Counted from the stretch's first letter, positions 16,706 through 63,352 are shown. The stretch is DNA of 64,000 bases from Macrostomum lignano (GCA_002269645.1 NIVC01002762.1:50877-114876); one strand, 5' to 3'. Numbers and translations are program-made. Notes: generated from the sequence alone by a model not told the origin.

Positions 16706-16756
<51 letters not shown>

Positions 16757-20577: not shown

Positions 20578-22030
20578 ATGGATTGCTAATCTATAGCCAT
20601 ATCTGCTGGGTGAAGGAACAGAATGGATTGCTAATCTGTAGCCATATCTGCTGGATGAAGGAGCAGAATGGATTGCTTATCTATAGCCATATCTGCTGGG
20701 TGAAGGAGCAGAATGGATTGCTTATCTATAGCCATATCTGCTGGGTGAAGGAACAGAATGGATTGCTAATCTGTAGCCATATCTGCTGGATGAAGGAGCA
20801 GAATGGATTGCTTATCTATAGCCATATCTGCTGGGTGAAGGAGCAGAATGGATTGCTTATCTATAGCCATATCTGCTGGGTGAAGGAACAGAATGGATTG
20901 CTAATCTGTAGCCATATCTGCTGGATGAAGGAGCAGAATGGATTGCTAATCTATAGCCATATCTGCTGGGTGAAGGAGCAGAATGGATTGCTAATCTATA
21001 GCCATATCTGCTGGATGAAGGAACAGAATGGATTGCTAATCTGTAGCCATATCTGCTGGGTGAAGGAACAGAATGGATTGCTAATCTATAGCCATATCTG
21101 CTGGGTGAAGGAACAGAATGGATTGCTAATCTGTAGCCATATCTGCTGGATGAAGGAACAGAATGGATTGCTAATCTATAGCCATATCTGCTGAATGAAG
21201 GAACAGAATGGATTGCTAATCTGTAGCCATATCTGCTGGGTGAAGGAGCAGAATGGATTGCTAATCTGTAGCCATATCTGCTGGATGAAGGAACAGAATG
21301 GATTGCTAATCTATAGCCATATCTGCTGAATGAAGGAACAGAATGGATTGCTAATCTGTAGCCATATCTGCTGGGTGAAGGAACAGAATGGATTGCTAAT
21401 CTATAGCCATATCTGCTGGGTGAAGGAACAGAATGGATTGCTAATCTGTAGCCATATCTGCTGGATGAAGGAACAGAATGGATTGCTAATCTATAGCCAT
21501 ATCTGCTGAATGAAGGAACAGAATGGATTGCTAATCTATAGCCATATCTGCTGGGTGAAGGAGCAGAATGGATTGCTAATCTATAGCTATATCTGCTGGA
21601 TGAAGGAACAGAATGGATTGCTAATCTGTAGCCATATCTGCTGGATGAAGGAGCAGAATGGATTGCTAATCTATAGCCATATCTGCTGGGTGAAGGAACA
21701 GAATGGATTGCTAATCTATAGCCATATCTGCTGGGTGAAGGAACAGAATGGATTGCTAATCTATAGCCATATCTGCTGGGTGAAGGAGCAGAATGGATTG
21801 CTAATCTATAGCCATATCTGCTGAATGAAGGAACAGAATGGATTGCTAATCTGTAGCCATATCTGCTGGATGAAGGAACAGAATGGATTGCTAATCTGTA
21901 GCCATATCTACTGGATGAAGGAACAGAATGGATTGCTAATCTATAGCCATATCTGCTGGATGAAGGAGCAGAATGGATTGCTAATCTATAGATATATTTG
22001 CTGGATTATGAAATAAAATGGATTGCTAAT
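20578..22030. repeat. 45-bp satellite, about 32 copies
   Basis: 15-residue periodic ORFs (KEQNGLLIYSHICWV); units differ mainly at three or four positions. Confidence 0.98.
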
Positions 22031-22534
22031 CTTTTTACGTAATATAATAAGTGTCGATCTAAACCTCCATTTCTTCGTATATTTTAGAGCAGTCCCAAAC
22101 GCCTCTACTCAAATAAGTAGTGCAGCATGAAATCTACTAAAAGCTGTCACTCACAATAAGTCTGCCGCCACCTGACTGGTCAGCGCCTGGCACATTCTTC
22201 TTCAAGCCACTGGCCACCTCTGACCAGATGTTCAGCTGCCGTTTCTCCTGCTCATCCCGGGTGTCAGACATCACTCGGTCTACAGCGCCTCGAAGTTTGG
22301 CCAACGACGAGCTGCTTGCTTCTGCGGCCACCGTTTAGTGATCGAAATTTGAAATTCTATTTAGTATAGCTAGTGGCAAACTTTAAAAAGCAGGACGAAA
22401 ACTATAACGTCCTTGTTGAATCAAATTAGACTGAAATACTTGTATTATGGATGCTAATATTTTTAGTAGCGTAAACGAATGCAATATTTTCGAAGTGAAC
22501 TAACTATTCGAGACTGACCTAAAATGTAAGCGAC

Positions 22535-24032: not shown

Positions 24033-30091
<6,059 letters not shown>

Positions 30092-31067: not shown

Positions 31068-34000
31068 TCACTTCGGTCTCTTGAACTGCCTGTCCTTGGC
31101 GCCGACCTCGCACAGCTGGAGCACCCGGGCCGGCGTCAGCGGCAGCTCGAACGTCAGGTTCACGTCCGGCTTTCCCTGCTGCTTCCGGAAGGCCTCAATC
31201 GCTCTCTTGATGGCGGTGACGCAGGTGGCCGCCAGACCGAGCGGCGGCTCCCCGATCGCCTTGGTGCTGAACACGCTGTCGGTGTCTCCCGGCTTCTTCA
31301 GCAGGTGGACGCGGAAGTCGCGCGGCACGTCGGCAGCCTGCGGCGGCTTATAGTTCCAGGTACCGTCGGCCAGGTTTCGCCCGGTGTCGGAGTCGTACAC
31401 GGTTCTCTCGTCAGGTAGTAACCCATGCCGAACACGTAGGCGCCCTCGATCTGGCCAATGTCCACGCCAGGGTTGAGGCTCTTGCCGATGTCCATCGTGA
31501 TGTCGGACCGCAGGACGACGTACTCGCCGGTGAGGATGTCCACCTCCACCTCGGCCGCGCCAACGCCGAGGGTAGAGTAGCGAGCGTGCTGGCCTTCACG
31601 GTCCTTAGGATAGTAGCTGTGAATCGGTTAGGTTTAAGTTAACTTTTTACAATTCTTTAGGTAAATTTTGTCTGTTTCTAATCAAAAAAAAAGTTTTCAG
31701 GGATTCGAAGGAAAAGAGCTGTTTTCACGAGTATTGACTGTCTATTCTGTGACAGTGTCGTACAGTTATAGTTGGTTTTGTATCGACAGCGTCGCAGAAC
31801 CCTCCCACCGCTTCTGAGGACGTACTGCTCTGTCTCACATTCATCAGTGCATCTACACCTTTTAGCTGCAGCGCGTTGAAGCAGTCACCTCTGCATGGAC
31901 TCGCCAGGTGCACGAACTGCGATATTGAGTCCTATCACCGAGGTCTGTCACGACTAATTAAGACAACACACCTTAATTTGTGGCTTTACCATAGACAGTC
32001 TTGTGAAAGCGATCAAGACACATCTGCTACACCTTTCTGCGTCCTATTTCGATAAAACTGCATTCAATATCGACATCGTATATTCGATATCGGCAGCTAG
32101 CGCCTCGTGCGGCAGACTGTCTATGGAAACTGCACTCAATTTCGCCAGCGCCAATCTAAAAGGAAAATAAAGACAGAATAGTGGGATTTCTTAGAGTCTG
32201 CACAAGTACTGCATTTGGAGTACAGTCCCTACCTCGATTTTTACCATAGAGAGTCCATGCAAGCTGAAAGTCGGCAACCCACCATTTTGCAGCAGCAACC
32301 AATTTTCTTGAATTCATCATTACTGTTCCCTGACCTCTAAGTACGAGCTAATGTACATGTATTTAAATCGAAGCTTTTGCTTTCATACCAATTTCAAAAA
32401 AGGGCTTGTAGCCTAGTTTTTAGATCATCGGATTCACGACTTGAAGGTCGGGGGGTTCGATTCCTGATCTAACTGGAACAATTTGTGTCCTTGAGCAAGA
32501 CACTTAACTCTGCATTGCTTCAGTTCACCCAGCTGTAAAATGGGTGCCAGCATTAGCTGGGGTAATTGAGGGTGTGTGGCGACCCCCCAGTCCTTGGACT
32601 GAACAGCCGTACGCAGCCTTCAGATGCGCCGCGCAATAGCTGCGGCTGAGCTGTCGGTTGCACATCTGGCCCAATTGGGGCAGGCGTAATCAATTACTAT
32701 TATAATAATAATAATTATTATTATTAAAATTTCAAATCGCGCTTCGCTCCGGTTTTTCATTTTACTTTTAATTGCTCGACTTTGTATTTCATCTGGAAAT
32801 ATATATTACGACTCGTTTCGCATGCTTGTTATTGCAAGATTTTCTCTCTTTTTCTCTGACGGGAGGTGACTACAGTGAAAATTGTGTCACTGCTGCTTCT
32901 ACTGCTAAATTTTTGAAGACGTAGCCGGGTTAGGTTGGCAGATGAGCTCTCTGGACTCTCTGGAGCCTCGAAAGTAAGTCGGCCAAAGCTGAAACGCATT
33001 ATTCGTAAAAAAATTACTCGCAATTTTTTTGGTTCCGTTTTCTAAACATAATGAATTTGAGATCAAACGCTGAACAGGTGTGGTAATTAAAGCTTTTTGC
33101 TTGGTTTTCACACATTCTGGATATTTATCTGCTACAGATCTTCTCGAATTTGATGCCCGTGTCTGCATTTTCAAAGCAAGTAATTGGCATATAGGTCCAA
33201 TTCAATTACTCACGTTCCGAAAGCCTTGAGCAGTACGCCCGAGTTGATGGCAGTCGATACCAGCTCAAGCCAATTCGCCTCCGGCTTGGTTAATTTAATT
33301 GGCAACAGCCGCTCTCTGATTTGACTGCCAGCAACCTTCGCGGCCATGGCGTTGAGCTCGCTGGTAGCGCTGCCACCAGTTCCGTCCATCTGCGGCAGCA
33401 GCATGCTATCTGTCGGTTTGGTCTTCACCATGTCGAGCGCAGCACCAAACTCGGCCAGTTGAGCAACAGCCGCTTGAGCAACTTTCGTGGTCAGACCCTG
33501 GCCCATCTCGGCACCGCAGTGCACAATAGAGATGCTGCCGTCAATGAGCACAGTGACATCTACCTGAGGTATTCCGAACCTCTCGTAGGACACCGGATAG
33601 GATATTCCGGACATGTCTATGCCGCGTTTTCTGTACAAGTTCTCCTATTTTAATTTATTATAAAGGAGGGGTTACAGCTCGTGTTTGAATGAAATAACTA
33701 TAGCTGAATATACAGCTTTGAGTTAGCTCACCTTATTGAACTGCTCAACACGTTTTCTTCGCTTGTCAATATCAGCTGCAATGCTGAGCTCATCCCACAT
33801 TCGCGCCATGTTGTCGTCGGGCCGTTTTAGACCGGTAAAGTCAGTCTGGACGGAGTTTAAGTAGGTAATTAAAAATGTGTTCTTTAAGATGTGCTCTGTG
33901 CTGCAATTGTGACAAGTTGAGACGGCCGTTGACAGTGGATCATGATGGATCACACCTGTTGACAGTGGATCATGATGGATCACACCTGTTGACAGTGGAT

Positions 34001-34990
34001 CATGATGGATCACACCTGTTGACAGTGGATCATGATGGATCACACCTGTTGACAGCGGCTACGGGTAATTTTACACCCAAACATGTACATATAATAATAA
34101 TATTTGAATGTCCCTATGACACCTGCCCCAATGGCGCCGCGCATCTGAATGCTGCGTACGGCTGTTCAGTCCCAGGACTGGGGGGTCGCCACACACATCC
34201 ACTCAATTACCCCAGCTAATTCTGGCACCCATTTTACAGCTGGGTGAACTGAAGCAACGCAGAGTTAAATGTCTTGCTCAAGGACGCAAATCGTTCCTAG
34301 CGGGTAGAGAATCGAACTCCCGACCTTTCAGTCATGAGTCCGACGCTCTCTGACCACTAGGCTAAACGACGCTGCTAAACGATCGATAGTAAAACTACGA
34401 GCTAAGAATATCATCTTCGAATGCAATCAGAAGTATTGCACCTGACTGACTTACCTGACCGGCACAGTACAGGTTCCTTCTTTTGAACTCAATAGGATCC
34501 AATTTCAACTCGTGAGCCAGGTGATCCATCATGAGCAGGCTAAATACTGCTGCTGGCGCCGAGCCCGGACATCGCACGGACGTTGTCTGTGGCTTATTAG
34601 TCTTCAAGAACAGCAGATCCCGCTTGTAAGTCGGCGAATAGAACGCCTGATCCAGGGACTGGTCGATTTCGTGTCCCAGAATCACGATAAAGTTGCACGA
34701 ACTGCCGGCATCGACAATTGACTGCCAGTGAACGCTCATTAACTGCCCGTCGGCGGATGCTCCAGCTCTGTATTTGGCCATCACAGTCGGTCGCTTCTGT
34801 CCGCATTGAGCCAGCGTGTCCAGGCGCACAAACATGCGACACGGCCGGTGAGTGATGTCGCAAGCGATGGCGCACACAGCAACTGCGTGGTCAACCTTGT
34901 TGTCGATTAAGATGATGTTTGCAAAAATGTGAGTCATGCCGAATTAACTCGATTGCTGATAGAAGCTCGTAGTCGGTGGGAGACAGATAA

Positions 34991-35037
<47 letters not shown>

Positions 35038-35122
35038 CGCCAGGGGTTAGCGAAATGGGCGGCAACGCCTCCTCGCTGTTTCCGGACGCACGGAGCCCCC
35101 TGCAGCTAAGTCAAGTAAGTAA

Positions 35123-35153
<31 letters not shown>

Positions 35154-35154
35154 A

Positions 35155-35207
<53 letters not shown>

Positions 35208-35214
35208 CACAGAA

Positions 35215-35273
<59 letters not shown>

Positions 35274-38200
35274 GACAGACAGACAAATCGTGAACTACAC
35301 ATTTTTGAGCAAAGAACTCACTAAGCTTTTTAACCAAGACTTTTTAAAATGATCAGTATGTTCATTAGAAGCAATCAATCAGTAAATATTGATGTACAAA
35401 CCATGAAAAACTTTCCACCGAAGCCGCCGCCAATTCTCGGACAGATCACTCGAAACTGATGCTGCGGTCGACGCATGACTTTGGCCAGCACCGCGGCCAC
35501 AATCTCTGCCCACTGATGCGGCGCGTTCACTACAAAACCTTCCTCGGTTTGGCGGACACTCGCGGTGATCGACTCCATGAAAAAGTGCATCTGCTCACCC
35601 ACAGAAATCTCACCTTCTACTTGAACCGGCTGTTCGCTTAAGGCAATATCGGGGTCCAGTTTAGAAACTTTCTGAGTATCGTGAAAGTAAATTGACTTCT
35701 TTTTGAATGCTTCTGTTGGGTGCAGAATCGGTTCCGACTTTCCGGGTTCGTATCGGACAGCCACCAGACTGGCCGCTCGGTCGGCGGCCCACTGCGAGTC
35801 AGCCGCAGCCACGGCTATGGGCTGACCGGCAAATGCCACGTCGGACGAAGGAAAAATTTCGTCTGTTTGCCTTGGAAATTTTTTTCTGTGTTATAAATGG
35901 AAATTACGCACCTGTGCATCTCTGAAGCTATAATATTACGAGTACTTACGAATCCTTTGGGAAAATAGGCAAGCTAATATTATTGTTGTATCTTCCTTCC
36001 AGGTCACTGACAGACAGTAAGCGCTGATACCCAGGAACATTCTAAAACGGAAAGCAAGAGATACTTCCAATCAGCTACTAAGGCACATTTGTTGTTGGTC
36101 GTAATCTTAGAGACTACTTGGATTGTTAATGTTAAATAACCTCAGCTTCCTCAGTGTCGAAACCTGTGACCTTGATGGCGGCCTCGGGAGCCAGAACGTA
36201 GGCCAAGAACAGCTCATTTGCGTGAGCTGGGTAGTCGTTCACGTAGGTGGCCTCGCCGGATGTCTGCGCCTTGGACTCGAGCTTCCTGACCGACTGGCCC
36301 AGCGGTGCCGGCTGAAGCTCTTCGACAAAGTCCTGCTCGCCCCTCTGGAGAGGCCGGGTGAGGACGGGACCGCCCGAGCGAGCGGCGCCTTCCACAGCGT
36401 CGCTGCCGATGTCCAAGATGGTCTTGTAGAGAAGATTCACGGCCAGCTGTCGACGGTGCTCGGGCGAGGAGGCGGTGGCTTCCTCGACCGGCACCACCTC
36501 CGACTCGAGCACCTTTAGTGCCGCTGTGAGGATTAAAATGCTTGAGTAAAATAATAATCTTATTATCATTGAAAATAATATTGTTTTAAGTTTTCATAAG
36601 CTTACACTCCACAACTTCTGAATCCATAAGGCTCTTGTGCAGAAGAAAGTTCTCTGTCCCCGTGGCTCGATTCTACGACAAAAACGTACACAAAAATTAA
36701 GCTGTGAGGCTACTAAAGCTACAGAACTACAGAACCACATGCAGTGCTTACAAATTTGTCAGAAATTCCTCCAATAACAATAGTAGGACGCTCAATCACA
36801 GTGTAGTCTTTTTGCTTATTAACGGCAAGCTGGAACGCTCCGTTGACGTAGGCATGAGCGTTCTGCAAAACGTGGAGAGTGACATTTTATATACTAGAGC
36901 AGTGAAAAAGAGCTAGATAATGTTGCACGTGTAACTCACAAGCTGACGCAGCGTGATCTTGAACGACCTGTAGAAGTGCTGGTCCGTCGAGATCGCCGGC
37001 AGCTTGGCCGACACGATCACCTTCCCGCGCATGTCCAGCCTCAGAAAGTCGGTCAGCACGTGATCCTGAGTACCCTGCTCATCCGCCACCTTGATCACGG
37101 TCTTTGCCGCCTCCAGTGTGATGAACACGTCCGACGGAAAGTCCTGGTGTCGGTGCTTCATCATGAGGTTTCCAGCCCACGACGCATTCGCGCGAACGGC
37201 CTGATTGGCTACCTGCTGGTAGTGGTCGCTGATTCTGTCGAGGTGAGCCAGTCCGGTCACCTTCTCGGCGGCCTCCTTGAATGTGTCGATCAACTCGCGC
37301 AGAGTGACGGTAGCACCGATCTCCAGACCCGACTTGCTCAGCTGAAACCAATGCGAAGTGTTACTTAGCTTGCACTTTGAGCGTACAGTCCATCTGATAA
37401 ACTCTTGCTGTAACATCTACTACTCACCCTGATGTTGTGCAGCTCTGGAACGTTGCGAACGTTGATGTAGCAGTTGACGAGCACGTCTTCCTTGAACACT
37501 CCGGCAGAAGTGTTTCCGCACACGAGCTGGTACTCATCGTCCTTGTACCGCTTGAGCAGCTTGAGCAGTTGGTCTAAGCTTCCAGGATTGTAGAAGCGCT
37601 GTCCCTTCCAGCCGCGAGCGATCGGGATCACACCGGATGTAGGTGGTTTCGCGATGCCTTCAGCGCACAGGCTCTTGTTCATTTCCTGAGCAATGGAGTT
37701 GATGTTGTATGTGTGAAGGGGTTGAATGGGATGTTGAAAGGTACTACTGATTGTGCGCCAGATAACATAGGTGCAAACCTCAGACTCACCTCGATGTCCA
37801 CGCAATCACCGTTGTTCGAGTCGCACGCGAACGACTTCATGCCGTCGAGAATGGACCGATAGCCTGTGCAGCGACAAATGTTTCCATCGAAGAAGTGCTC
37901 GACCTGCTGCATCGTCGGCTTCGGGTTCTCCTGCAGCTGGCTGTACATGCTCATGACGAATCCGGGAGAGCAGAAGCCGCACTGGGTTCCATAGTGCTCG
38001 GCGAGTCTCTCTTGGATCGGGTGGTACGGCTTGCCGCTGCCTCCGATGCCCTCGATGGTGGTGACATGCCAGCCTACTGCCGAGTACACCGGACACAAGC
38101 ACTGCAAACGATCACACGAGTCGCGTCATGACCCCAGAGCTGACGTATTCAACTTCATCCTTAGTAGGTCGTAATCACGAAGCAAAAGGTGACTCACCGA

Positions 38201-38513
38201 GTTGACAGGCACTGACACGACCTCTTCTGTAGCCGGGTGCTTGTAGGTGGCCGTGACAACGCAGCATCCGCACCCGCCTTCTCTACACATAACTTTGGTG
38301 CCCTTGAGGTTGAGCACATCGCGAAGGAAGTCGTTCAGGCTGGTCTCAGGGTTGCAGTCTCTGGGAACTACATTAAACGTTTGGGAAGAAATTGATCAAA
38401 AGTGCCAATTAATGAAGAAAAGTCAAGAAAGAATGCTTATCTCGCTTACTATCGATGGGTTTTCCATTGACCCACACTGCTGGGTCTCTGATGGAAGACG
38501 AGACGTCACTCAT
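31068..38513 (-). CDS. Aldehyde oxidase/xanthine dehydrogenase-family molybdo-flavoenzyme, copy A (14 exons, about 1290 aa); 1-nt frameshift at about 31410 in the last exon
   Basis: Exon 1 38513-38450 ([21 protein letters not shown]); 2Fe-2S motifs [26 protein letters not shown]; FAD segment VCGNTSAG and ASWAGN; Mo-domain [28 protein letters not shown]; last exon 31616-31068. Confidence 0.92.
32401..32727 (+). mobile_element. tRNA-derived SINE with CORE-like central domain and (TAA)/(TAT) tail
   Basis: B-box GGTTCGATTCC; GTGTCCTTGAGCAAGACACTTAAC...CTTCAGTTCACCCAGCTGTAAAATGGG resembles the remembered MIR/CORE consensus GTGACCTTGGGCAAGTCACTTAAC...CTCAGTTTCCTCATCTGTAAAATGGG. Confidence 0.8.
33927..34053. 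repeat. 30-bp array (GTTGACAGTGGATCATGATGGATCACACCT), about 4 copies
   Basis: Direct reading. Confidence 0.95.
34110..34372 (-). mobile_element. Second copy of the CORE-like SINE, inverted relative to 32401-32727
   Basis: Minus strand TAGCCTAGTGG (A-box)...GTTCGATTC (B-box)...GTCCTTGAGCAAGACATTTAAC...CAGCTGTAAAATGGGTGCC...GGACTGAACAGCCGTACGCAGC shared with the plus copy. Confidence 0.85.
34985..35285. repeat. (AGAC)n microsatellite interrupted by an ~80-bp GC-rich segment (about 35037-35120)
   Basis: Direct reading. Confidence 0.95.
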
Positions 38514-38961
38514 AGTCGGTCGGTTTGCAGATCAATACAATTTCTGTCGTTTTTTTCTATCGAACGACGGCTCTCCCACAGTCACTTCAGCTACTGTTTT
38601 AAATAGCATACTCCAGCGAGAAAGTGTGCTTAGCTTATTTGGTATTGCTGCTTTTAGCCAATTAAGGCAAGTCAGATCTTTACTATCTTTTGAAGTACTT
38701 GGCAAAGGAAATGGAACGGCTTTTTTAGATTGGAGCCGGTCAGTATGTGTTCATACTTTATTGCACGTGCCTCGCTATGTCAGCAGTTTATAGCTTGCTG
38801 AATGCCAACACTTGCGTTAGAAATTGATCTCTTAATGATAAGAGAACGGAAGATAGCTTTGAGATACATGTAGAACTGAGAAGCTCGTGTTTTTCGAACT
38901 ACATTTCATAGCCACACTCCTTTGACCGACAACAAGCATTTTGAAACGATTTCTTTTAATA

Positions 38962-39634
38962 AACTCAGCAACATTGAAAAGTTTCCACCCTCGCGCCAGC
39001 CGTATATTTAGAGTTTCAAAACTGGTTTTTGTCGCCAGACTTGTGCTATGGACAAAAACTTGGGTCATAGACGCCAGATAGGTCGAAGGAAACAGTCACA
39101 TGGAGCAGACAGCAGCAGCTTACAGGAGTCTAAAATCCACGTTCGCAACCGAACGCAATGGTTCGCCAAATGACCGACCTGGAACGAGCGCGCGCCATTG
39201 GCATGCTGGACGCTGGGATGTCCATCCGAGCTGTTGCTCGCTAAATTGGGCGGTCATGAATCCCATAGAGCACGTTTGGGATTACCTGAAGCGCTCGATT
39301 CGGCGCGACAATCCGCCGCAAAACGTTGCCCAACTGCGCGAATCACTGTCTACTGCATGGCAACAACTACCGCAAGATTTTCTGCGACGCCTGGTTCTGG
39401 GGATGCCCCGGAGAGTGAGCGCTCTGCTGCACGCACGTGGCTGCTATACGCGTTACTGACCCTGTTCTGGGCAAGTTGTCACCCATGCTCGCGTACTTTG
39501 TTTCTTCGCTGTTCCTTTGCTTCGTTCGAATCCGGATTATATATTTGTCTATGGCTCAAACCACGAACATCTCCACCCACCAAAACGTTGACCCTTCGCG
39601 CGTTGGGGTGGAAACTTTTCAATGTTGCTGAGTT
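38962..39634 (+). mobile_element. Internally deleted Tc1/mariner element (673 bp)
   Basis: 29-bp perfect TIR AACTCAGCAACATTGAAAAGTTTCCACCC (38962-38990 / 39606-39634), left flank TA. HTH start MTDLERARAIGMLDAGMSIRAVAR is fused directly to the C-terminal MNPIEHVWDYLKR...MPRRVSALLHARGCYTRY*. Confidence 0.88.
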
Positions 39635-40129
39635 GAATTGTCTATGGCCGAAACAGGACTTTCAGTTATTGACCAGCCATTAAGCAAAGGTCATTACCGT
39701 GATGTAAAATTTCGATCAGTGGCTTGCAAGGCCGATAGTGTGTAGCTGATAAATACGTTTCGGCCATACACCATCCACAGAAAAGCAAATGCTTATATTC
39801 CTGCATTCATGCCAAAAAAATTGGCTAGACTATAATCTGTTCTTCTGATTTATACCCCTTTTGGCCGCTCCAAATAAATGGCTCCGCCAATAGGAAAGCA
39901 AGAATCATTTATCTGGCCCGAGCCAAATAAACGATCCAAATAAATTAGACGCACGAATAACGATTTTTTAAATTTTATTTCGTCTATGGCTATAATAGAC
40001 AATTATAGTAGACAACAGAGTATAATGTTGTGAACAAGTAAATAACACAAAATTTTCCGTTTAAAGTTAGTCAATGGGTCATAACAAAGCAGCTCAATCA
40101 AACTAGACAACTACACGATTCGTCTCACC

Positions 40130-40715
40130 GCACAACTCCACACGCATCTTCTTTGCTGGTGGCTGTCCATTGGCAGGCCCCTCATTCGTGTCTTCATGCC
40201 ACGATCGAAAGACTCCTAGCCATCCAATTGCACTTCTTCTTTGTAGCTTCTGGCACATCAGACGCAATCATTTCATTGAGTCTTTGCTCATCTTCGTTGT
40301 AGTCGGTTGCCGGAGGAGCATTTGACAAGTTATCCAGAAGAGCTTGGACTTCAGCAAGACTAATACGTTCGAAACCGAAGCTCATGTTATCAATGTCACT
40401 CATGTTGAAAATAGCTCGAATTTCGCTGTTTTTTTAATTTAAGAGATTTGGTTGAGATTTCTCCCTCTGCAAGCTTCGCTTTTCTTTTTAGTAACTGTAC
40501 CAAGCTTTTTTAATTTTATTCGTCTATGGTTAGAATATGGGGGCTTCGCCCCCACACCCCCAGCAAGAAATCTGCATGCCCCCTCATCCCCGCTAGCAGC
40601 CAACATACCGAACGGGGTATAAATATATTATTTCCGTTTATTTAGTCTATGGTCTGAATTAATGGCAGAGGACTCGTTTCTTGGCCGAGGCAAAGAAATA
40701 AATAAACGGAAATAA
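40130..40715 (-). mobile_element. Possible Crypton/tyrosine-recombinase (DUF3504-like) element relic
   Basis: EQRLNEMIASDVPEATKKKCNWMARS-F-RSW (one frameshift) resembles the remembered N-terminal S.VP.NT.K.T.WA...F..W motif; 17-bp perfect inverted repeat at 40628-40644 / 40699-40715. No catalytic domain seen. Confidence 0.4.
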
Positions 40716-41285
40716 CTTTTACTTCTATACTAAAAATATGCCTGAACACTGATGCTAATGGCGATTTAAAAGTTGAGTACACTTCTTATATAGTCATTTC
40801 TTAGTTTATTCTTCTTAAAGGGCAATAAAACTAAATATTATTACAAATAAAAAACTTTTAGACTTTTTAGTCTTATTGATTCTTTTTTAAGTTTCTTTAA
40901 AGTTAGAACAACGTTTGCAATAAAAATCAATTCTAGATCGGTGACATTGTGCGATTGGAATAAAATCATTGAGAAAGGATATTTCCAGAGCAACAATCAG
41001 CATAAACACTCACACATACTCGTAGGTATTTATTTTAAAATTTGTTAAAGTATTAAATTAAAATATTGCATAAAGAATCGAGTCGTTTCCAGGGTTGCAG
41101 ATTGGTTTATTAAGTGAGTGATTTATTAACTATCGACCAAACAAAGGTTTGATAAAAAATCATTCTTCATAAATATATTAAGCTCGGACCAGGCGTGGCA
41201 TGGTTCAATCAAAGAATATAAACTGTAATCATTATGATTTTTTACTCAAACTGCCCCAAAAATTTACTCAAATAAAGTAGGGCTT

Positions 41286-44200: not shown

Positions 44201-47200
44201 ATTTTGAGGCTTATTTTGTTAAATCTCTTATCTATCTTAAGACTGCCTATCAGATTCAAATAGGTTTCGACATTCTGATTGATGTATTGTTTCATTACCA
44301 TAAACATTTTTCCACCAAATCCGCCGCCGATTCGCGGACTAATTGCCCGGATTTGATTCCTAGGCCTGCGAAGCACCTTAGAGAGCATCACGGTGACGCC
44401 CTCGATCCACTGGTGCGGCGCCTGAACTAGGAAGCCCTCCTCCGTGCGGCGCACGCTGGCGGTCAGCGACTCGATGAAGAAGTGAATCTGCTCGCCGACC
44501 GTCACTTCGCCTTCAACGCGAACTGGCTGCTTGGCCAGGGTGGCATCGGCGTCCTCCTTGGAAGCCCGCTGAGCATCCTTGAAGTGGATCGATTTCTTAG
44601 CCAAAGCCTCCGTGATGTGCACGATTGGCTCCTCGTCTCCGGCGTCGAATTTCACGTCGACAAGACTGGCTGCTCGGTCGGCGGCCCACTGGGTCTCGGC
44701 GAGGACCACGGCCACGGGCTGGCCAGCGAAGCCGACAAGCTTAGATGGGAAGATCTCGTCCGTCTGCCTAAAAGTTGTCGCGACTTTCTTAGCCATTTCT
44801 TAGATCATCTGCACTTTGTCTCTGTTTACTCAGTTTTCTCTCCCTCTGTCTAGTTCAATCTTGTTATTCTTATCTCTCTCTCCCTTGCTGCCTTCTGATT
44901 GGCTCTTCAATATCGTCTCTTTCCTTAGTCGCGCACTCCACCCCTTCTTGTTTTATATTGCACTCAACCCCCGCCCCCGCCCGGCTTTATTGCCATATAT
45001 ATACCCGTTGGGGCCCTAAGCCCCTCTGTCTAGCTGTCTCTCTGTTTTGTTTTCAACTCTAAATACTCTTAGTTTATTGATAATTCTTTACAAAAAAGGC
45101 AATTCAATTTCGTAGCTCATGGGCCAATAATCCAAGCGGGCAAGTAGAAGGGAGATGATTATGGACTTTACTGGAAATTTGAGAAGGCAGTTGAACATTA
45201 ATACTCATCCACCGATTGTTAATGAATTGCGGTTTTTTAATGTACATCTTAAAGGCATGACTCTCCGTTTTCATGGCAACGTAACTGACTGTACGAGGCG
45301 TTATACAATAACACTTTGCTTTGTGTATGGTTCAAGCATATCGATCAGAGAATAAAATTCAATGAACACTTTTCGTGACTCAGTGGACCTTCTCGAAATT
45401 ATTCGCTGCTTCATCTCAGAGTCTGAAGATTTTTTCTTCACAAGTTGCTTACCTTAACCGATATGTCTTATTGATTGCTTTGATTTGTAGCGACAGATTG
45501 ATAATTTATTTCCTGATATCGTTCGTTCAGACGTACGTGTAGACTTAATACGACCTACAGAAGATACGCTCGTAATTGTGACGATACAAGGAACTCACAT
45601 TTCTGGCGGGAAGATTGGCATCGTAGTGTTATTGGTGTACTTTCCCTCCAAGTCCTTCAAACTTAGCATGCTGTGGTATCCAGGGACTTTCTGAAGTGGT
45701 TAACTCTTGCATTAAAGTACATAAGTCTGGTTGACAAGCAAAATTCAATATCAAACTATCGCACCTCTGCTTCCTCAGTATCGAAACCGGTGACCTTGAT
45801 GGCGGCCTCGGGAGCCAGAACGTAGGCCAAGAACAGCTCATTCGCGTGAGCTGGGTAGTCGTTCACGTAGGTGGCCTCGCCGGATGTCTGCGCCTTGGAC
45901 TCGAGCTTCCTGACCGACTGGCCCAGCGGTGCCGGCTGAAGCTCTTCGACAAAGTCTTGCTCGCTCCTCTGAAGAGGCCGGGTGAGGACGGGACCGCCCG
46001 AGCGAGCGGCGCCTTCCACAGCGTCGCTGCCGATGTCCAAGATGGTCTTGTAGAGAAGGTTCACGGCCAGCTGTCGACGGTGCTCGGGTGAGGAGGCGGT
46101 GGCTTCCTCGACTGGCACCACCTCCGACTCGAGCACCTTCAATGCGGCTGACAAATATTTTCAGATGTGTCGGAGAATGTTTTAACTCTTCACTGTATCA
46201 AAACAAAACATAAGTATCTATATGAGCATTGATAATAAAGGCGACTCACACTGAACAACTTCTTCATCTAGCAGACTCTTGTTCAGAAGAAAGTTCTCCG
46301 TCTTGATGGCATGATTCTGTTGATTTAATTTAAGAGGAAACGTTTGACTTTCTGAATTTTTGTATTGAATTTCATTTTACAGTGCAACCGCTAGACGCCA
46401 AAACGAACTTACAAACTTATCAGATATTCCTCCAATCAGAATGTTCGGTCGTTCGGTCACTCGATAATTTTGCCTTTTGTCCACGGCAAATTGAAATGCG
46501 CCGTTTACGTAGGCATGAGCGTTCTAGAAAAATTTGCATACTCGCGTTAAAAACTGTATTACTAGCAGTAGGCAAATAAGCAAAATCTTACTCTTTGACT
46601 TTCGAAAAAGGACAGCAATTCAATTCTAGTGTCCTAAGCTATCAGTCTTGAGTAGGGGTGTTCGGGTTTCCATTTTTTCTAAGTCTAACCCGAACCCCGA
46701 ACCCGACCCGAAACCCGACCCGACCCCGAATCCCGAATACCCCTAGTCTTAAGAACTAAAGGCCTACTGGCTGAAAAAATACGATAACGATCAATTCGAA
46801 AAACTATACTGGCGAGTTACGACACTTTTATCTTCAATTTAATCTTAACGCTGAAGCAACGCAGTGTCAACGTTGTAAAGCCACTTTTTAGAACTAATCA
46901 TTCAGTTCTGTAATAGAAACGCTTTTCAGACTACTAAGAATAACAAAAACAACAAAATGCTAAAAGTAGAGCTCACGAGCTGACGCGGCGTGATCTTGAA
47001 CGACCTGTAGAAGTGCTGATCCGTTGAGATCGCCGGCAGCTTGGCCGACACGATCACCTTCCCGCGCATGTCCAGCCTCAAAAAGTCGGTCAGCACGTGA
47101 TCCTGAGTACCCTGCTCATCCGCCACCTTGATCACGGTCTTGGCCGCCTCCAGTGTGATAAACACGTCCGACGGAAAGTCCTGGTGTCGGTGCTTCATCA

Positions 47201-48777
47201 TGAGGTTTCCAGCCCACGACGCATTCGCGCGAACGGCCTGATTGGCTACCTGCTGGTAGTGGTCGCTGATTCTGTCGAGGTGAGCCAGTCTGGTCACCTT
47301 CTCGGCGGCCTCCTTGAATGTGTCGATCAACTCGCGCAGAGTGACGGTAGCACCGATCTCCAGACCCGACTTGCTCAGCTAAAAGCAAAGCAAAGATTTA
47401 TTCAGATTGCGAACTATTCAGATTGCGAACATACAATCCAACTGATAAACTCTTGCTGTAACATCTACCACTCACCCTGATGTTGTGCAGCTCTGGAACG
47501 TTGCGAACGTTGATGTAGCAGTTGACGAGCACGTCTTCCTTGAACACTCCGGCAGAAGTGTTTCCGCACACGAGCTGGTACTCATCGTCCTTGTACCGCT
47601 TGAGCAGCTTGAGCAGTTGGTCTAAGCTTCCAGGATTGTAGAAGCGCTGTCCCTTCCAGCCGCGAGCGATTGGGATCACACCGGATGTAGGTGGTTTCGC
47701 GATGCCTTCAGCGCACAGGCTCTTGTTCATTTCCTGAACAATGGAGTTGATGTTGTATGTGTGAAGGGGTTGAATGGGATGTTGAAAGGTACTACTGATT
47801 GTGCGCCAGATAACATAGGTGCAAACATCAGACTCACCTCGATGTCCACGCAATCACCGTTGTTCGAGTCGCACGCGAACGACTTCATGCCGTCGAGAAT
47901 GGACCGATAGCCTGTGCAGCGACAAATGTTTCCATCGAAGAAGTGCTCGACCTGCTGCATCGTCGGCTTCGCGTTCTCCTGCAGCTGGCTGTACATGCTC
48001 ATGACGAATCCGGGAGAGCAGAAGCCGCACTGGGTTCCATAGTGCTCGGCGAGTCTCTCTTGGATCGGGTGGTACGGCTTGCCGCTGCCTCCGATGCCCT
48101 CGATGGTGGTGACGTGCCAGCCTACTGCCGAGTACACCGGACACAAGCACTGCAAACGATCACACGAGTCGCGTCATGACCCCAGAGCTGACGTATTCAA
48201 CTTCATCATTAGTAGGTCGTAATCACGAAGCAAAAGGTGACTCACCGAGTTGACAGGCACTGACACGACCTCTTCTGTAGCCGGGTGCTTGTAGGTGGCC
48301 GTGACAACGCAGCATCCGCACCCGCCTTCTCTACACATAACTTTGGTGCCCTTGAGGTTGAGCACATCGCGAAGGAAGTCGTTGAGACTGGTCTCAGGGT
48401 TGCAGTCTCTGGGAACTATGAATTAAAGTTGGTTCTGTAGCTAAAGACAGCATGGATTATATTAAATTATCTCAGCCACTCCCCGGATCTTATAAACTGA
48501 GGTGGATACGTTGACAGGTATTTCATAGTCAGATAGTGTCATTAATTTGCGCCTGCTCGTATCAGATGAGACCAAGGGACGTCTCGACAACGTGTCAGAC
48601 ACTCGCACCAATTCGCATGTCCGTAATTATTCTCATCTTTCCATCGCTAGTAGTGCTTAGGCTTAAGTTTGTTAGAAACAAATAAAACTTTAGTGAAATA
48701 TACTTACTCTCAAGCGCTTTACCATTCACATGAATGGTTGGCTCCCCGCTGGATGCAGCTATCCCTCCTGAGTACAT
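41286..48777 (-). CDS. Aldehyde oxidase/XDH-family enzyme, copy B (14 exons); the only copy with no frameshift found
   Basis: Exons include 48777-48708, 48415-48246, 48149-47838, 47733-47476, 47378-46977, 46147-45765 and 41835-41286; same motifs as copy A; all checked junctions in phase. Confidence 0.93.
43575..43828. repeat. 7-bp array (CCAGCTA/CCGGCTA)n
   Basis: Direct reading. Confidence 0.95.
46653..46745. mobile_element. 93-bp hAT-like MITE in intron 5 of copy B
   Basis: TIRs TAGGGGTGTTCGGG / CCCGAATACCCCTA (13/14); flanks GTCTTGAG / GTCTTAAG (7/8) as 8-bp TSD. Confidence 0.8.
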
Positions 48778-49951
48778 TTCTTTTGAATATGATGTTTTCG
48801 AGACTACAGAGCTGAACTATATTCTATTAAGGCTAAGGTGAGTTGTAGCGATTAATTTTGCATTAGTTGCCATTTATATTCTTCAGTATTGTTTAGCGAG
48901 GTAGATTTGCTGATACAATTTTTCCAGTGTTATCAGTTTGTATTCAAATCCTAGTTAAGGCTGGTTGGTACCTGTGTGGCGGGTAGAATGTACGTCAGAT
49001 AAGAACCGCAACGAGCAAACTTGATTTAGTGAGCTGCACTCGAAGTCGGATCTCAGTTCGATGTTTTGCTACTAGCCTGCTGCAAGTCAACTCTCGTATC
49101 TGATAGCTAACCTCCAAGCAAAGTTTCTTTTAGGGTCAATTGGTTGAATCCATACGCTGCCCTGCTTCAATGCGAATTCATAACATTTTATCACAAATTT
49201 CTCAATTAGTACAAGTAGATACATCTTAACTAAGCGGTAAATCGACGGCTGATTATGTGTAAAATCTTCTTTATTTAAATGTTGGCTATGCGAAAGATAA
49301 TTCTATTGATTGATATGTAAAATGCTGGTTTTATTGTTTAATTACCAGCGAACTCAATCATGATTGGTCATAATTTCTTACAGAGCAGCACAAACAGCTC
49401 GCCTTCGATTAACCACGCAAGTAAAAAATTAATACTAGCTACGTCAAAAAGAATATTTTGCAACAAGATATTGTAGCTCGTAAAAGTCTTACTCATTCTC
49501 AGTGATCCTTTGCTGCTACAGAAACTACCAGCTACTTCAATAAAAAAATGACGGCCTAGCTTTAGGGGCGCTTAGATTTTAGCAAAAAAGCGTCAAATAA
49601 ATATCAACACACAGGGGTAGCTACCAAGAAAGTAATTCATAAAAAAGCAGTAGAACAAAAAGGGTTTAACAAAAAGCACAATATTTTTCAATTCAAAAAA
49701 ATTCAAAATTTAGGAATAGAAAAAACTGGCACTTTATGCGGCAGCTGATAAGTTAAATTAAAAAATCTAAATAGAAAACTAATGGCTACATATTATATAT
49801 ACATAGCAAACTTTTTTATTTAGATTCGCATTTATAAAGCGGTAGCGCAAAGTTCAAGCCAGAGACACCATAGCGCACGCAATAAACAACAAAATAAAAT
49901 CGTCCAAACGCTTGATCAGCGTAATCGAACACAGAGACAGCCCAATTTCTT

Positions 49952-52900
49952 TTACTCAGAATGTTTAAATTTCCTATCCTTGGTGCCGACCTCGCACAGC
50001 TGGAGCACCCGGGCCGGCGTCAGCGGCAGCTCGAACGTCAGGTTCACGTCCGGCTTTCCCTGCTGCTTCCGGAAGGCCTCAATCGCTCTCTTGATGGCGG
50101 TGACGCAGGTGGCCGCCAGACCGAGCGGCGGCTCCCCGATCGCCTTCGTGCTGAACACGCTGTCGGTGTCTCCCGGCTTCTTCAGCAGGTGGACGCGGAA
50201 GTCGCGCGGCACGTCGGCAGCCTGCGGCGGCTTATAGTTCCAGGTACCGTCGGCCAGGTTTCGCCCGGTGTCGGAGTCGTACACGGTTCTCTCAGTCAGG
50301 TAGTAACCCATGCCGAACACGTAGGCGCCCTCGATCTGGCCAATGTCCACGCCAGGGTTGAGGCTCTTGCCGATGTCCATCGTGATGTCCGAGCGCAGGA
50401 CGACGTACTCGCCGGTGAGGATGTCCACCTCCACCTCGGCCGCGCCAACGCCGAGGGTAGAGTAGCGAGCGTGCTGGGATTCACGATTTTGGCTGGCGTA
50501 GCTGAATGTTCGAGAACGTATCGTAAATTATTTATAATCTTTGTAAATCCAGTCACAGGTGACGAATTAGGAGCTTATGAATGGACTACTTACCTGCCGA
50601 AAGCCTTGAGCAAGACTCCAGACATGATTGCCGCGACAACCAGTTCGTTCCAACCGGCATCTTGCTTATTCTCTTTGATCGGCAACAAGCGCTCTTTGAT
50701 TTGATCAGCGGCAGCTTTGGCTGCCATGGCGTTGAGCTCGCTAGTAGCGCTGCCGCCGGTTGCGTCCATCTGTGGCAGCATCATAGTGTCGGTCGGTTTG
50801 GCCTTCACCATGTCGAGTGTGGCGCCAAACTCGGCCAGCTGAGCAACAGCCGCTTGAGCAACTTTCGTTGTCAGACCCTGGCCCATTTCCGTGCCGCTAT
50901 GCACAATGGAGATGCTGCCATCCATGTGCACCGTAAGATCGACCTCGGATATGCCAACGCGAGCATAACTGATCGGGTAGGAAATAGCGGACATGTCCAG
51001 CCCCCGTTTTTTGTACGCGTTGGCCTGAAAACACGGTGGGGGATTAAATGATGTATACTTAAATTAGGTAGCTCATGAACTCTGCTAAAACTGAATACGA
51101 CTTTGTAGTTAACAATCACACTTTTTCTTTACCAGATTGAAGGTGTCGATGTCTTTTCTACGCTGGTCTATCTCAGCTGCAATGTACGCTCGTACAACTC
51201 GTCCCACATTCGCACCAGATTGTCTTTTGTTCGTTCCATGCCATTCTGGTCCAACTTGAATTGGATTGGTTTAAATATTCCAAAGTAAAGAAAGGACTAA
51301 CATCTCTTAGCGCTCATGATTTTTTGCTTTGAAAATTGATAAATATGTCTATTACCTGTCCGTCTCTATACAAATTCTTTCGTTTGAAGTCGATAGGATC
51401 AATTTTTAGCTTATAAGCCATGTGGTCCATCATGAGTAGGTTGAACAGCGCGGCTGGACCGGCTCCCGGAGCTCGAACTGATGTGCTCTGTGGCTTATTC
51501 GTTTTTAGGTAAGTCAGATTCCTCTTGAACGTTGGCGAGTAGTACGCTTGATCCATTGAGTCATCCATCTCTCGGCCAATGATGGTGACAACATTACAGA
51601 CGTAGCCCGCGTCCAAATAAGAGTCCCAATGGACGCTCATTAGCTGACCATCCTCTGTAGCGCCAGCTTTGTACTTTGTGATCACGGTTGGACGCTTCTG
51701 GCTGTACTGGGCCAGAGAATCAAAGCGAAGAAACATGCGACAGGGTCGGTGGGTAATATCGCAGGCGATGGTGCAGAGAGCAGTAGCGTGATCTATCTGT
51801 AATGCGCGGAGTATAAAATGCCGATGTGTATAGCTTTGTGACTCAATACTTCAACGAAATGCAAATATTCAGCATAAAAATCGGTGACTGCCAACCATAA
51901 AAATTTTTCCACCGAATCCGCCGCCCAAACGGGGACAGACCACTCGAAAATGGTTCCTTGGTCTGCCCATCACCTTGGCGAGCACCATAGAGGAAACTTC
52001 TGGCCACTGGTGCGGCGCATACACCAAAAAGCCTTCCTCTGTTTGGCGAACGCTGGTAGTCACTGACTCCATGAAGAAGTGCAGCTGCTCACCGACCACA
52101 AACTCTCCTTCAATCTGCACCGACTGCTTTGCCAACTCAGCGTCAGGGTCTTCTTTCGAGGCTCTTTGTGCATCCTGGAAGAACATAGATTGCTTAGCCA
52201 AAGCCTCCGTGATGTGCACAATTGGCTCATCATCTCCGGCATCGAAGTTCACTTCGACCAGACTGGCTGCCCGGTCGGCGGCCCACTGGGTCTCGGCGAG
52301 GACCGCGGCAACGGGTTGACCAGCAAAACCAACAGCTTTGGATGGGAAGATCTCGTCCGTCTGCCTAAAGACACCAATTTTATTCAGGGGCATGCATAGA
52401 TTTCTTCTTATACTTTGTAGAAATCCTTTCACGTGCGTTTAGGAATATACCAGATTACGAGTACTTACGGTACACGAAGAAATAAGCAAATGTTGTCAAA
52501 ACTTACGCCTCGGGAGGAAGAATAGGAAGAGTGCAGTTGTTGGTGTATTTTCCCTCTAAGTCCTTGACTGTAAGGATGCTGTGGAAACCAGGCACTCTCT
52601 GTAAAAATTTTTTGAATTCAATAAACTAGGCATCGTGGTCTGGGGAAAAGCAGATCTATTTTCTAAAAAAGTGACAAACATGCATAATATATGTACCTCA
52701 GCTTCCTCAGTGTCGAAACCTGTGACCTTGATGGCGGCCTCGGGAGCCAGAACGTAGGCCAAGAACAGCTCATTCGCGTGAGCTGGGTAGTCGTTCACGT
52801 AGGTGGCCTCGCCGGATGTCTGCGCCTTGGACTCGAGCTTCCTGACCGACTGGCCCAGCGGTGCCGGCTGAAGCTCTTCGACAAAGTCCTGCTCGCCCCT

Positions 52901-55128
52901 CTGGAGAGGCCGGGTGAGGACGGGACCGCCCGAGCGAGCGGCGCCTTCCACAGCGTCGCTGCCGATGTCCAAGATGGTCTTGTAGAGAAGGTTCACGGCC
53001 AGCTGTCGACGGTGCTCGGGTGAGGAGGCGGTGGCTTCCTCGACCGGCACCACCTCCGACTCGAGCACCTTCAGCGCGGCTGAAAGTTTTTGAGTGTCGG
53101 TTAAGTGATTGTCAAGTTTTCAAGCGATTCTTAAGTCCAAATAATATTTTAACAACACAATTCTTCGTTTAAAACTCACATTCGACAACCTCTTCATCCA
53201 GAAGGCTCTTGTTCAACAGAAAGTTTTCTGTCTTCGTGGCTCGATTCTACAACAGACAAGGTTACATGTCAACTACTTTGTTGCTTCTGTTTCTGTTCTA
53301 TAAGTTTAGAATCAGCTGCAGTGCTTACAAATTTGTCAGAAATTCCACCAATAACAATGGTTGGACGCTCAAGCACAGTGTAGTCCTTTTTCTTGTCAAC
53401 AGCAAGCTCAAAGGCTCCGTTGACGTAGGCATGGGCGTTCTGCAAGAGAAACATGTGGGTATTTCAATGTAGCAAAGTATTATTGGTTATACATAGTGTT
53501 GTGTCAGAAATACATGATTGACTTTTAGCTCACGAGCTGACGCGGCGTGATCTTGAACGACCTGTAGAAGTGCTGGTCCGTCGAGATCGCCGGCAGCTTG
53601 GCCGACACGATCACCTTCCCGCGCATGTCCAGCCTCAAAAAGTCGGTCAGCACGTGATCCTGAGTACCCTGCTCATCCGCCACCTTGATCACGGTCTTGG
53701 CCGCCTCCAGTGTGATAAACACGTCCGACGGAAAGTCCTGGTGTCGGTGCTTCATCATGAGGTTTCCAGCCCACGACGCATTCGCGCGAACGGCCTGATT
53801 GGCTACCTGCTGGTAGTGGTCGCTGATTCTGTCGAGGTGAGCCAGTCTGGTCACCTTCTCGGCGGCCTCCTTGAATGTGTCGATCAACTCGCGCAGAGTG
53901 ACGGTAGCACCGATCTCCAGACCCGACTTGCTCAGCTAAAAGCAAAGCAAAGATTTATTCAGATTGCGAACTATTCAGATTGCGAACATACAATCCAACT
54001 GATAAACTCTTGCTGTAACATCTACCACTCACCCTGATGTTGTGCAGCTCTGGAACGTTGCGAACGTTGATGTAGCAGTTGACGAGCACGTCTTCCTTGA
54101 ACACTCCGGCAGAAGTGTTTCCGCACACGAGCTGGTACTCATCGTCCTTGTACCGCTTGAGCAGCTTGAGCAGTTGGTCTAAGCTTCCAGGATTGTAGAA
54201 GCGCTGTCCCTTCCAGCCGCGAGCGATTGGATCACACCGGATGTAGGTGGCTTCGCGATGCCTTCAGCGCACAGGCTCTTGTTCATTTCCTGAACAATGG
54301 AGTTGATGTTGTATGTGTGAAGGGGTTGAATGGGATGTTGAAAGGTACTACTGATTGTGCGCCAGATAACATAGGTGCAAACATCAGACTCACCTCGATG
54401 TCCACGCAATCACCGTTGTTCGAGTCGCACGCGAACGACTTCATGCCGTCGAGAATGGACCGATAGCCTGTGCAGCGACAAATGTTTCCATCGAAGAAGT
54501 GCTCGACCTGCTGCATCGTCGGCTTCGCGTTCTCCTGCAGCTGGCTGTACATGCTCATGACGAATCCGGGAGAGCAGAAGCCGCACTGGGTTCCATAGTG
54601 CTCGGCGAGTCTCTCTTGGATCGGGTGGTACGGCTTGCCGCTGCCTCCGATGCCCTCGATGGTGGTGACGTGCCAGCCTACTGCCGAGTACACCGGACAC
54701 AAGCACTGCAAACGATCACACGAGTCGCGTCATGACCCCAGAGCTGACGTATTCAACTTCATCATTAGTAGGTCGTAATCACGAAGCAAAAGGTGACTCA
54801 CCGAGTTGACAGGCACTGACACGACCTCTTCTGTAGCCGGGTGCTTGTAGGTGGCCGTGACAACGCAGCATCCGCACCCGCCTTCTCTACACATAACTTT
54901 GGTGCCCTTGAGGTTGAGCACATCGCGAAGGAAGTCGTTGAGACTGGTCTCGGGGTTGCAGTCCTTGGGAACTGTTTAGGTTTAGAGGGATGCACGATTT
55001 TATTTGTGTGTTAATACGCTCGTAAGCACAAAGAGCAATATTATTAGACTTGATTTACCATTAGTGGCTCTTCCGTTAACGAAAATCACGGGATCACCGC
55101 TGGAAGGCACAATGCCGCTCGAATACAT
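49952..55128 (-). CDS. Aldehyde oxidase/XDH-family enzyme, copy C (14 exons, compact introns); frameshifts at about 54230 (exon 4 is 257 nt vs 258 nt) and about 51184-51191 (exon 12 is 122 nt)
   Basis: Exon 1 55128-55059 (MYSSGIVPSSGDPVIFVNGRATN), exons 54971-54802, 54705-54394, 54289-54033, 53935-53534, 53079-52697 and last exon 50501-49952; same catalytic motifs. Confidence 0.9.

Positions 55129-56419: not shown

Positions 56420-63352
<6,933 letters not shown>

Follow-up and report, generated by a model that had tools for sequence, protein, structure and literature searches.

Patchwise homogenization of old aldehyde oxidase duplicates in Macrostomum lignano and its probable origin in ectopic gene conversion

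A stretch of 64,000 nucleotides from contig NIVC01002762.1 of the Macrostomum lignano assembly Mlig_3_7, GCA_002269645.1 (the window, from whose first letter all coordinates are counted unless another locus is named) contains three tandem aldehyde oxidase genes on its minus strand. We call these A (31068-38513), B (41286-48777) and C (49952-55128). Each has 14 exons, with introns that all have GT-AG borders. Within the genes, segments that are almost identical between the copies alternate with segments that are strongly diverged. We consider it very probable that the three genes, and a fourth paralogue (D) found in the same assembly, are old duplicates that have been homogenized patchwise by repeated, homology-dependent ectopic gene conversion. 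Their status as old paralogues rests on the saturation of synonymous sites and on the observation that most of their introns cannot be aligned.

Alternation of near-identical and diverged segments

The mosaic was assessed by self-BLAST, by a three-way MAFFT alignment of the genomic sequences and from the identity and synonymous divergence (dS) of each exon, and all of these agree. Exons 2-5 are 97.1-100% identical between the copies with dS of 0-0.108, and exon 8 is 96.6-98.4% identical with dS of 0.064-0.135. Exon 14 is 95.1-95.8% identical (dS 0.083-0.101), with the differences concentrated at both ends of the exon. The other exons (1, 6, 7 and 9-13) are 56-88% identical, and their dS ranges from 0.49 to saturation. 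Pooled differences amount to 1.9-2.4% in the homogenized exons versus 27-30% in the remaining exons (Fisher P <= 1e-126). A preliminary description of this DNA had claimed near-identity, including synonymous sites, for exons 2-5, exon 8 and most of the last exon, and the measured values (95.1-100%, dS 0-0.135) bear this out; a dS similarly low across all exons is excluded. Its list of diverged exons stands except for exon 13. There a core of the exon (about nucleotides 100-330; 33315-33545 in A by alignment) is partly homogenized, A and B being 92-97% identical over ~200 nt.

Homogenization includes introns. Introns 2 and 3 are 99-100% identical across A, B and C, as had been described. Intron 4 is the same in B and C; in A its 5' half is near-identical and its 3' half carries an 11-nt gap and ~11 substitutions. 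The earlier claim that this intron is common to B and C is therefore right, but it is not largely different in A, given the state of the 5' half. Most introns next to diverged exons are not alignable; A and C can nevertheless be aligned through exons 6-7 and introns 5-7 at 64-88%. Thus dS near zero and identical introns in the tracts are found together with saturated divergence elsewhere in the same genes, which is the pattern of concerted evolution.

Tract 1 extends from the acceptor of exon 2 to the donor of exon 5, with introns 2-4 inside, and encodes the 2Fe-2S and FAD modules. In A it lies at 36935-38369 and is 97.1% identical to B over 1447 nt (dS 0.016-0.108). In B it lies at 46972-48417, and the identity to C, exons and introns together, is 99.5% over 1448 nt; in C self-BLAST and alignment place it at 53529-54973. 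Its edges fall 2-3 nt upstream of exon 2 and 5-6 nt past exon 5. The second tract is exon 8, of 383 nt, 96.6-98.4% identical as given above; our exon models reproduce exactly the coordinates previously assigned to it (36523-36141 in A, 46147-45765 in B and 53079-52697 in C). The core of exon 14, containing the catalytic glutamate motif AIGEPP, was placed by alignment at 31090-31590 in A, ~41809-41302 in B and ~50475-49968 in C. All these tracts lie on the minus strand, like the genes. Together they encode the 2Fe-2S, FAD and CO_deh_flav_C domains, the start of the hammerhead domain and the catalytic glutamate of the last exon. Each is flanked by diverged sequence on either side, and we conclude that sequence was transferred non-reciprocally in patches and not by unequal crossing-over. 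When the longest identical fragment is placed without conditioning, its length is significant (P <= 1e-4).

Purifying selection alone might keep the redox modules identical without any transfer of DNA, and the tracts do encode cofactor-binding domains. Yet the synonymous sites and introns are identical too, the tract exons are only 51-70% conserved relative to distant paralogues, and the grouping of B with C inside a cluster, described below, contradicts simple descent. As a control for constraint, distant M. lignano paralogues (P0004-6) were compared with B. In exons 4, 5 and 8 they are only 51-59% identical to it, no higher than in the variable exons, and thus the ~100% identity of the tracts does not come from constraint alone. 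Purifying selection as the sole cause is refuted by the identical introns and synonymous sites, and we give it virtually no probability.

The tracts also differ from the rest of the genes in base composition. The guanine plus cytosine (GC) content at third codon positions (GC3) is 0.68-0.88 in homogenized exons versus 0.41-0.74 in the other exons. Among introns, the co-converted introns 2 and 3 have a GC content of 0.43-0.49 versus about 0.22-0.41 for the other short introns. This excess resembles, and is consistent with, the effect of GC-biased gene conversion, as a correlation and not as proof.

Cluster copies, a fourth paralogue and the timing of transfer

Further copies were reached in the same assembly through cluster members of the first protein matches. 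One locus (L001) holds a second cluster consisting of C1, B1 and part of A1, and is ~97% identical to the window including introns and spacers. Another (L003) holds a third copy, with part of B2 and A2. Paralogue D (locus L004) and A2 are on one contig, NIVC01001128.1, and lie 185 kb apart. The M. lignano line has been described as carrying three homeologous subgenomes with about 2% single-nucleotide polymorphism divergence (PMC10733133). The three copies of the cluster fit that description, and the extra copies are probably those of the other subgenomes.

Counterpart copies of the variable exons differ by 0-1.6% (3.5% for exon 13 of A and A2, which contains a 28-nt patch discussed below), compared with 19-34% between paralogues. 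In the exon 2-5 block this pattern is reversed. B and C differ by 0.4% and B1 and C1 by 1.3%, versus 1.5% between B and B1 and 2.2% between C and C1. Eighteen quartet sites in this block group B with C and B1 with C1, while 4 follow orthology, all of them at the ends of the tract. In addition, B1 and C1 have in common a 16-nt deletion in intron 4 that is absent from B and C. As B resembles C in exons 2-5 more than either resembles its counterpart, a transfer of DNA between these two genes is later than the separation of the cluster copies. Exons 10-11 have 0 concerted sites versus 107-154 orthologous ones. In exon 8 there are 0 concerted versus 4-6 orthologous sites, and in exon 14 there are 2 versus 21, so that in neither exon are the genes of one cluster closer to each other than to their counterparts. 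As the sites in these two exons follow orthology, their conversions predate the split of the cluster copies.

Paralogue D differs from the cluster genes by ~5% in exons 2-5, 5.5-7.6% in exon 8 and 7.5-8.2% in exon 14, and in exons 10-13 it is as far from them as any paralogue. With C it shares a further, very recent tract (53178-53637 in C, minus strand) comprising the middle of exon 5, intron 5, exon 6, intron 6 and exon 7, with 3 mismatches in 460 nt. The last ~100 nt of exon 5 belong to it, and it finishes 2 nt into intron 7. Intron 5 is 100% and intron 6 is 97.6% identical between C and D.

These comparisons bear on the possibility that the duplicates are young, and that their variable exons either diverged fast or were imported by conversion from distant aldehyde oxidase paralogues. 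The genome does contain paralogues (P0004-6) that are about 50% identical and could in principle be donors. However, the synonymous sites of the variable exons are saturated and the introns are unalignable, which positive selection on the protein could not produce. The variable exons of A-D are 53-88% identical to each other versus 39-68% to P0004-6, so no known paralogue is the donor. Moreover, the 0-1.6% divergence of counterpart variable exons (3.5% for A and A2 exon 13), at ratios of nonsynonymous to synonymous differences (pN/pS) of 0.10-0.29, indicates that they evolve slowly today. Young duplication therefore retains only a small probability. The account of old paralogues undergoing repeated gene conversion, put forward in the preliminary description, is supported by the near-zero dS of the tracts, the co-homogenized introns, the diverged flanks and the 18 versus 4 quartet sites.

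The third cluster copy is not uniformly similar to the window. Compared with window 45643-28162, L003 is 99.5% identical in the 3' half of B; the value drops to 98.5% across the spacer and into the 5' part of A, and then to 96.5% in the 3' part of A. The L003 spacer also contains an insertion of ~900 bp relative to the window. The shifts in identity suggest recombination between subgenome copies or a chimeric scaffold.

Tract edges and the route of transfer

The edges quoted in the preliminary description, namely the acceptor of exon 2, the donor of exon 5, AAGGTGCTC in exon 8 and CACGCTCGC in the last exon, are all correct. Its view that the tracts are bounded by exons reads too much into these edges. 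Tract 1 does end at splice sites. Exon 8 is bounded in this way only relative to B; in that comparison identity runs from about nucleotide 8, at AAGGTGCTC, to the donor, and the introns on either side are unalignable. Several other edges lie inside exons. The exon 14 tract starts ~27 nt into the exon at CACGCTCGC and stops ~20 nt short of the stop codon. A, C and D still align through introns 5-7. Edges thus coincide with splice sites only if the intron next to them is no longer homologous, as expected under homology-dependent conversion.

It had also been suggested that exon-limited tracts could indicate a complementary DNA (cDNA)-mediated route, in which a spliced transcript of a paralogue is the template for repair and the tracts consequently end at exon borders. 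Tract 1, from the acceptor of exon 2 to the donor of exon 5, and exon 8, identical to B from ~8 nt inside the acceptor to the donor between unalignable introns, have the shape that such a template would give. But introns 2-4 lie within tract 1 at 99-100% identity (intron 4 between B and C only), and the C/D tract holds the complete introns 5 and 6. Edges within exons, at the exon 14 tract, the C/D tract and the exon 13 core, are also contrary to this route. A spliced template for exon 8 should have converted exons 7 and 9 too, and these are 60-82% identical. Finally, no intron has been lost, all 13 being present in every complete copy. With introns inside the tracts and no intron loss, we reject a cDNA template for tract 1 and the C/D tract, see no need for one at exon 8, and regard this route as extremely unlikely. 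That the exon 8 island in particular goes back to an RNA- or cDNA-templated repair event of its own, apart from the DNA-templated conversions behind the other tracts, has only a very small probability; so has a milder reading, in which selection actively maintains a constant redox chassis plus a variable pocket across the paralogues and subgenomes of a neopolyploid.

Homology-dependent ectopic conversion would act in the following manner. A break in one paralogue would be repaired non-reciprocally using another paralogue as the template. Conversion would persist only in islands that are similar enough to pair, namely the exon 2-5 block and the short introns within it, exon 8, a portion of exon 13 and the exon 14 core, and every event would restore the identity required for the next one. 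Exons 1, 6-7 and 9-13 and their introns may have fallen below the threshold for pairing, or conversions there may be selected against. These unconverted regions carry the substrate-pocket positions and evolve independently. As the heteroduplex would be unable to extend into non-homologous DNA, an edge would form where a conserved exon meets an unalignable intron.

The assembly itself might be a source of apparent homogenization. Mlig_3_7 was produced by Canu from PacBio reads and then polished by Pilon with Illumina DNA reads and STAR-mapped RNA sequencing (RNA-seq) reads (PMC5730564). Mis-mapped short DNA or RNA-seq reads could have overwritten real differences during polishing and so left exon-shaped tracts. 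RNA-seq polishing, as applied to Mlig_3_7 (PMC5730564), touches exons only, and the assembly holds three near-identical subgenomes, with 36% of scaffold length reported to be chimeric (PMC10733133). However, a divergence of 30% is too great for reads to be mis-mapped, and the effect of polishing would be limited to removing a few per cent of differences; it could not make a contrast of ~98% versus 67%. Introns 2-4 are homogenized as well as the exons. Common variants specific to a cluster, such as the 16-nt indel of B1 and C1, have been kept, and cross-talk would blur such variants and not produce them. All three of the single-base frameshifts in the fetched copies lie inside homogenized tracts (two of them in short C runs), suggesting that polishing was ineffective rather than over-active; they may be uncorrected PacBio errors where short reads map to multiple places. 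The protein models, which apparently come from a separate prediction and possibly from another public assembly, also agree with the exons of the window. We therefore think an assembly or polishing artefact very unlikely.

A number of observations weigh against conversion as we have described it, or limit how far it can be taken. The exact identity of the tracts rests on one PacBio assembly, polished by Pilon with DNA and RNA-seq reads (PMC5730564). When the length of the longest identical fragment was tested by a Sawyer-type permutation that conditions on variable sites, P was 0.06-1, although this test is powerless with three sequences homogenized in the same places, where the variable sites are clumped. 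dS is saturated in the pocket exons, and selection for diversity there is conjecture. The GC excess of the tracts could be due to codon-usage selection instead of GC-biased conversion. Lastly, in the 28-nt patch of exon 13 (33420-33393) A of the window and A2 differ at 14 sites, and A is the same as B at 14 of 14. We had considered this patch as a clean conversion from B to A. That was dropped, and the patch kept out of the primary evidence, when the A2 state proved to be unique among all nine copies compared. The direction is ambiguous: A2 may preserve a relic left by earlier patchy conversion, or it may have undergone a separate clustered change.

The enzymes, their surroundings and wider significance

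Gene models were made by mapping annotated proteins onto the minus strand and then reading the splice sites. The exons of A are 38513-38450, 38367-38198, 38101-37790, 37685-37428, 37341-36940, 36862-36752, 36672-36606, 36523-36141, 36041-35950, 35870-35402, 34895-34455, 33845-33732, 33644-33214 and 31616-31071, followed by a TGA stop codon, and the UniProt fragment P0007 maps onto exons 8-14. Those of B are 48777-48708, 48415-48246, 48149-47838, 47733-47476, 47378-46977, 46523-46413, 46316-46250, 46147-45765, 45690-45599, 44767-44299, 43333-42893, 42813-42700, 42589-42159 and 41835-41289, with a TAA stop codon. B has an intact frame of 1289 codons, and its translation is identical to NCBI PAA55389.1 (BOX15_Mlig028303g1). 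C is a compact copy, with exons 55128-55059, 54971-54802, 54705-54394, 54289-54033, 53935-53534, 53439-53329, 53246-53180, 53079-52697, 52598-52507, 52364-51896, 51796-51356, 51254-51133, 51024-50594 and 50501-49952. A rough translation of C is 80-95% identical to M. lignano proteins and 35-38% identical to molluscan and insect aldehyde oxidase or xanthine dehydrogenase. Exon lengths are equal across the three genes except for exon 1 of A, the indels of the lesions below and the 3' end of exon 14. The outer limits proposed earlier, the start codon of C at 55128 and the stop codon of A at 31070-31068, match these models. Two corrections to the earlier account are that the last exon is exon 14 and that A and C have lesions in their reading frames. 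Intron 10 is 506 nt long in A, where a short tandem repeat of GTCT/CTGT type (34940-35343) fills much of it and gives long CLSV-type repeats in all three frames, versus 99 nt in C.

All seven Pfam domains of the family (Fer2, Fer2_2, FAD_binding_5, CO_deh_flav_C, Ald_Xan_dh_C, MoCoBD_1 and MoCoBD_2) score above the curated cut-offs in the B protein. They follow the order of the xanthine oxidoreductase and aldehyde oxidase molybdo-flavoenzymes (2Fe-2S, FAD, CO_deh_flav_C, a/b hammerhead, MoCoBD_1, MoCoBD_2). The best solved structure for B is 7px0, the aldehyde oxidase 1 (AOX1) of Drosophila, matched over the full length with 728 bits compared with 545 bits for vertebrate XDH; the XDH structures are likewise matched over their full length. 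A 12-residue segment of B with the GEPP motif aligns with KAVGEPPLFLAA of human XDH, so that the catalytic glutamate is retained; it aligns with human XDH Glu1262, equivalent to bovine Glu1261, and is found in A, B, C and D. At the position of bovine XDH Glu802 (GGGFGGK-x), in exon 10, the residues are F (A), M (B), I (C) and L (D). The position of bovine Arg880 corresponds to Glu in the alignment to human XDH, to within one residue. Replacement of Glu802 and Arg880 is what separates AOX from XDH. Given the best match to 7px0, the retention of the catalytic glutamate and the replacement of Glu802 and Arg880, aldehyde oxidase is a reasonable label for genes A-C, judged from sequence. The placement of the Pfam domains, and of the Glu802 equivalent (M, F, I or L) in the variable exon 10, upholds the earlier proposal that the electron-transfer and catalytic-glutamate modules are constant and the pocket exons variable.

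Several copies have interrupted frames. In A one nucleotide is missing from exon 14, between 31410 and 31409, which causes a frameshift. Two lesions interrupt the frame of C, namely the loss of one nucleotide in exon 4 (CCC to CC at 54230) and the insertion of 8 nt in exon 12 (51191-51184). C1 has neither lesion of C, and has instead a 1-nt deletion in exon 2 (L001 2178-2346). In A1 a 1192-bp element interrupts exon 5 (L001 20849-22040). Its terminal inverted repeats are ~30 bp long, GCAGGTAGC appears to be its target-site duplication, and it contains a split THAP domain scoring 28.4 bits (cut-off 23.9). It looks like a non-autonomous P-element-like DNA transposon that has disrupted A1. In A2 a region is missing that begins at nucleotide 60 of exon 2 and reaches almost to the end of intron 4 (L003 ~8240-8259, corresponding to window 38309-37362), and both 2Fe-2S domains are lost with it; the NCBI model for A2, P0129, comprises only the C-terminal 558 residues. 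When counterpart copies are compared, the variable exons of all three genes have the pN/pS of 0.10-0.29 given above, and these genes were therefore under purifying selection until recently. We considered whether A and C are old pseudogenes. This is ruled out by these pN/pS values, by lesions that differ between cluster copies and by the location of all the 1-nt indels in polishing-resistant tracts.

The cluster is bracketed by (TAAC)n arrays at 28162-29810 (~412 units, ~1.3 kb downstream of A) and 56619-57011 (~99 units, ~1.5 kb upstream of C), and the same array lies beside the cluster copies (L001 1-460; L003 about 15703-17450). Just upstream of C is an NCBI protein of 441 residues with a ligand-gated ion channel domain (PF00060) at 56420-58310 on the minus strand (L002 468-2358), whose span overlaps the (TAAC)n array. 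Minisatellite arrays crowd the flanks (1-28000 and 59500-63300), for example at 2268-3561, 9594-10195, 24335-24796 and 25439-26036. The array at 13314-14122 is related to those at 61366-61627 and 62196-63219, and that at 20577-22032 is arranged in 90-nt steps. An array closely similar to 24335-24799 lies upstream of paralogue D (L004 3143-3686).

Annotation of the cluster has some oddities. UniProt models of this region (P0001, P0002, P0123 and P0130; window 41286-55128 and 38367-48777) are chimeric, passing from the last part of C into exon 2 of B, and from the last part of B, by way of an open reading frame in the spacer, into exon 2 of A. Two further models have 3478 and 4223 residues. The chimeras may reflect either read-through transcripts or prediction artefacts. 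The spacer reading frame, of 79 codons (40197-40433, minus strand), lies between B and A and forms part of the fused model P0002, and no Pfam domain matches it at E <= 0.01. No gene is called for C in the NCBI locus L002, which was reached through the B protein and matches window 58777-31286 at 100%.

Concerted evolution restricted to certain regions by ectopic conversion is known from primate gamma-globin, red and green opsin, RHD/RHCE, CYP2D6/CYP2D7 and the variable exons of clustered protocadherins. The aldehyde oxidase cluster resembles these textbook cases in that old tandem duplicates have been homogenized patchily and non-reciprocally, including synonymous sites and introns, and other segments have escaped. 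The more distant paralogue, here D, also differs more in the tracts, and the converted tracts are enriched in GC. The cluster is unlike them in its gene family, a molybdo-flavoenzyme, in its host, a free-living flatworm with three subgenomes, and in an unusually clean alternation, with four islands among 14 exons. AOX genes are clustered in rodents and insects. Like these XDH-derived animal AOX clusters, that of M. lignano has the seven-domain architecture, retains the catalytic glutamate, has replaced Glu802 and Arg880 and consists of tandem copies with different pocket residues. In contrast to them, the N-terminal redox half and the last exon are here almost identical between paralogues, and we know of no description of domain-wise homogenization in the rodent or insect clusters. 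In the collection of papers searched for gene conversion with aldehyde oxidase or with Macrostomum lignano we found no report of the present case. It is a clear but ordinary instance of concerted evolution by gene conversion, that is, a new example of a known process that involves no new mechanism.

The significance of the cluster is as a well-resolved natural case in which conversion and divergence partition the gene of a multi-domain enzyme, with the redox and catalytic-glutamate modules held in common and the pocket exons diverging. The three copies of the cluster in one genome allow the conversion events to be ordered. There are practical consequences too. Public models merge C, B and A, and short reads map to multiple places in the tracts, which affects annotation. 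Knock-out and expression work in this transgenic model flatworm must allow for the near-identical segments.

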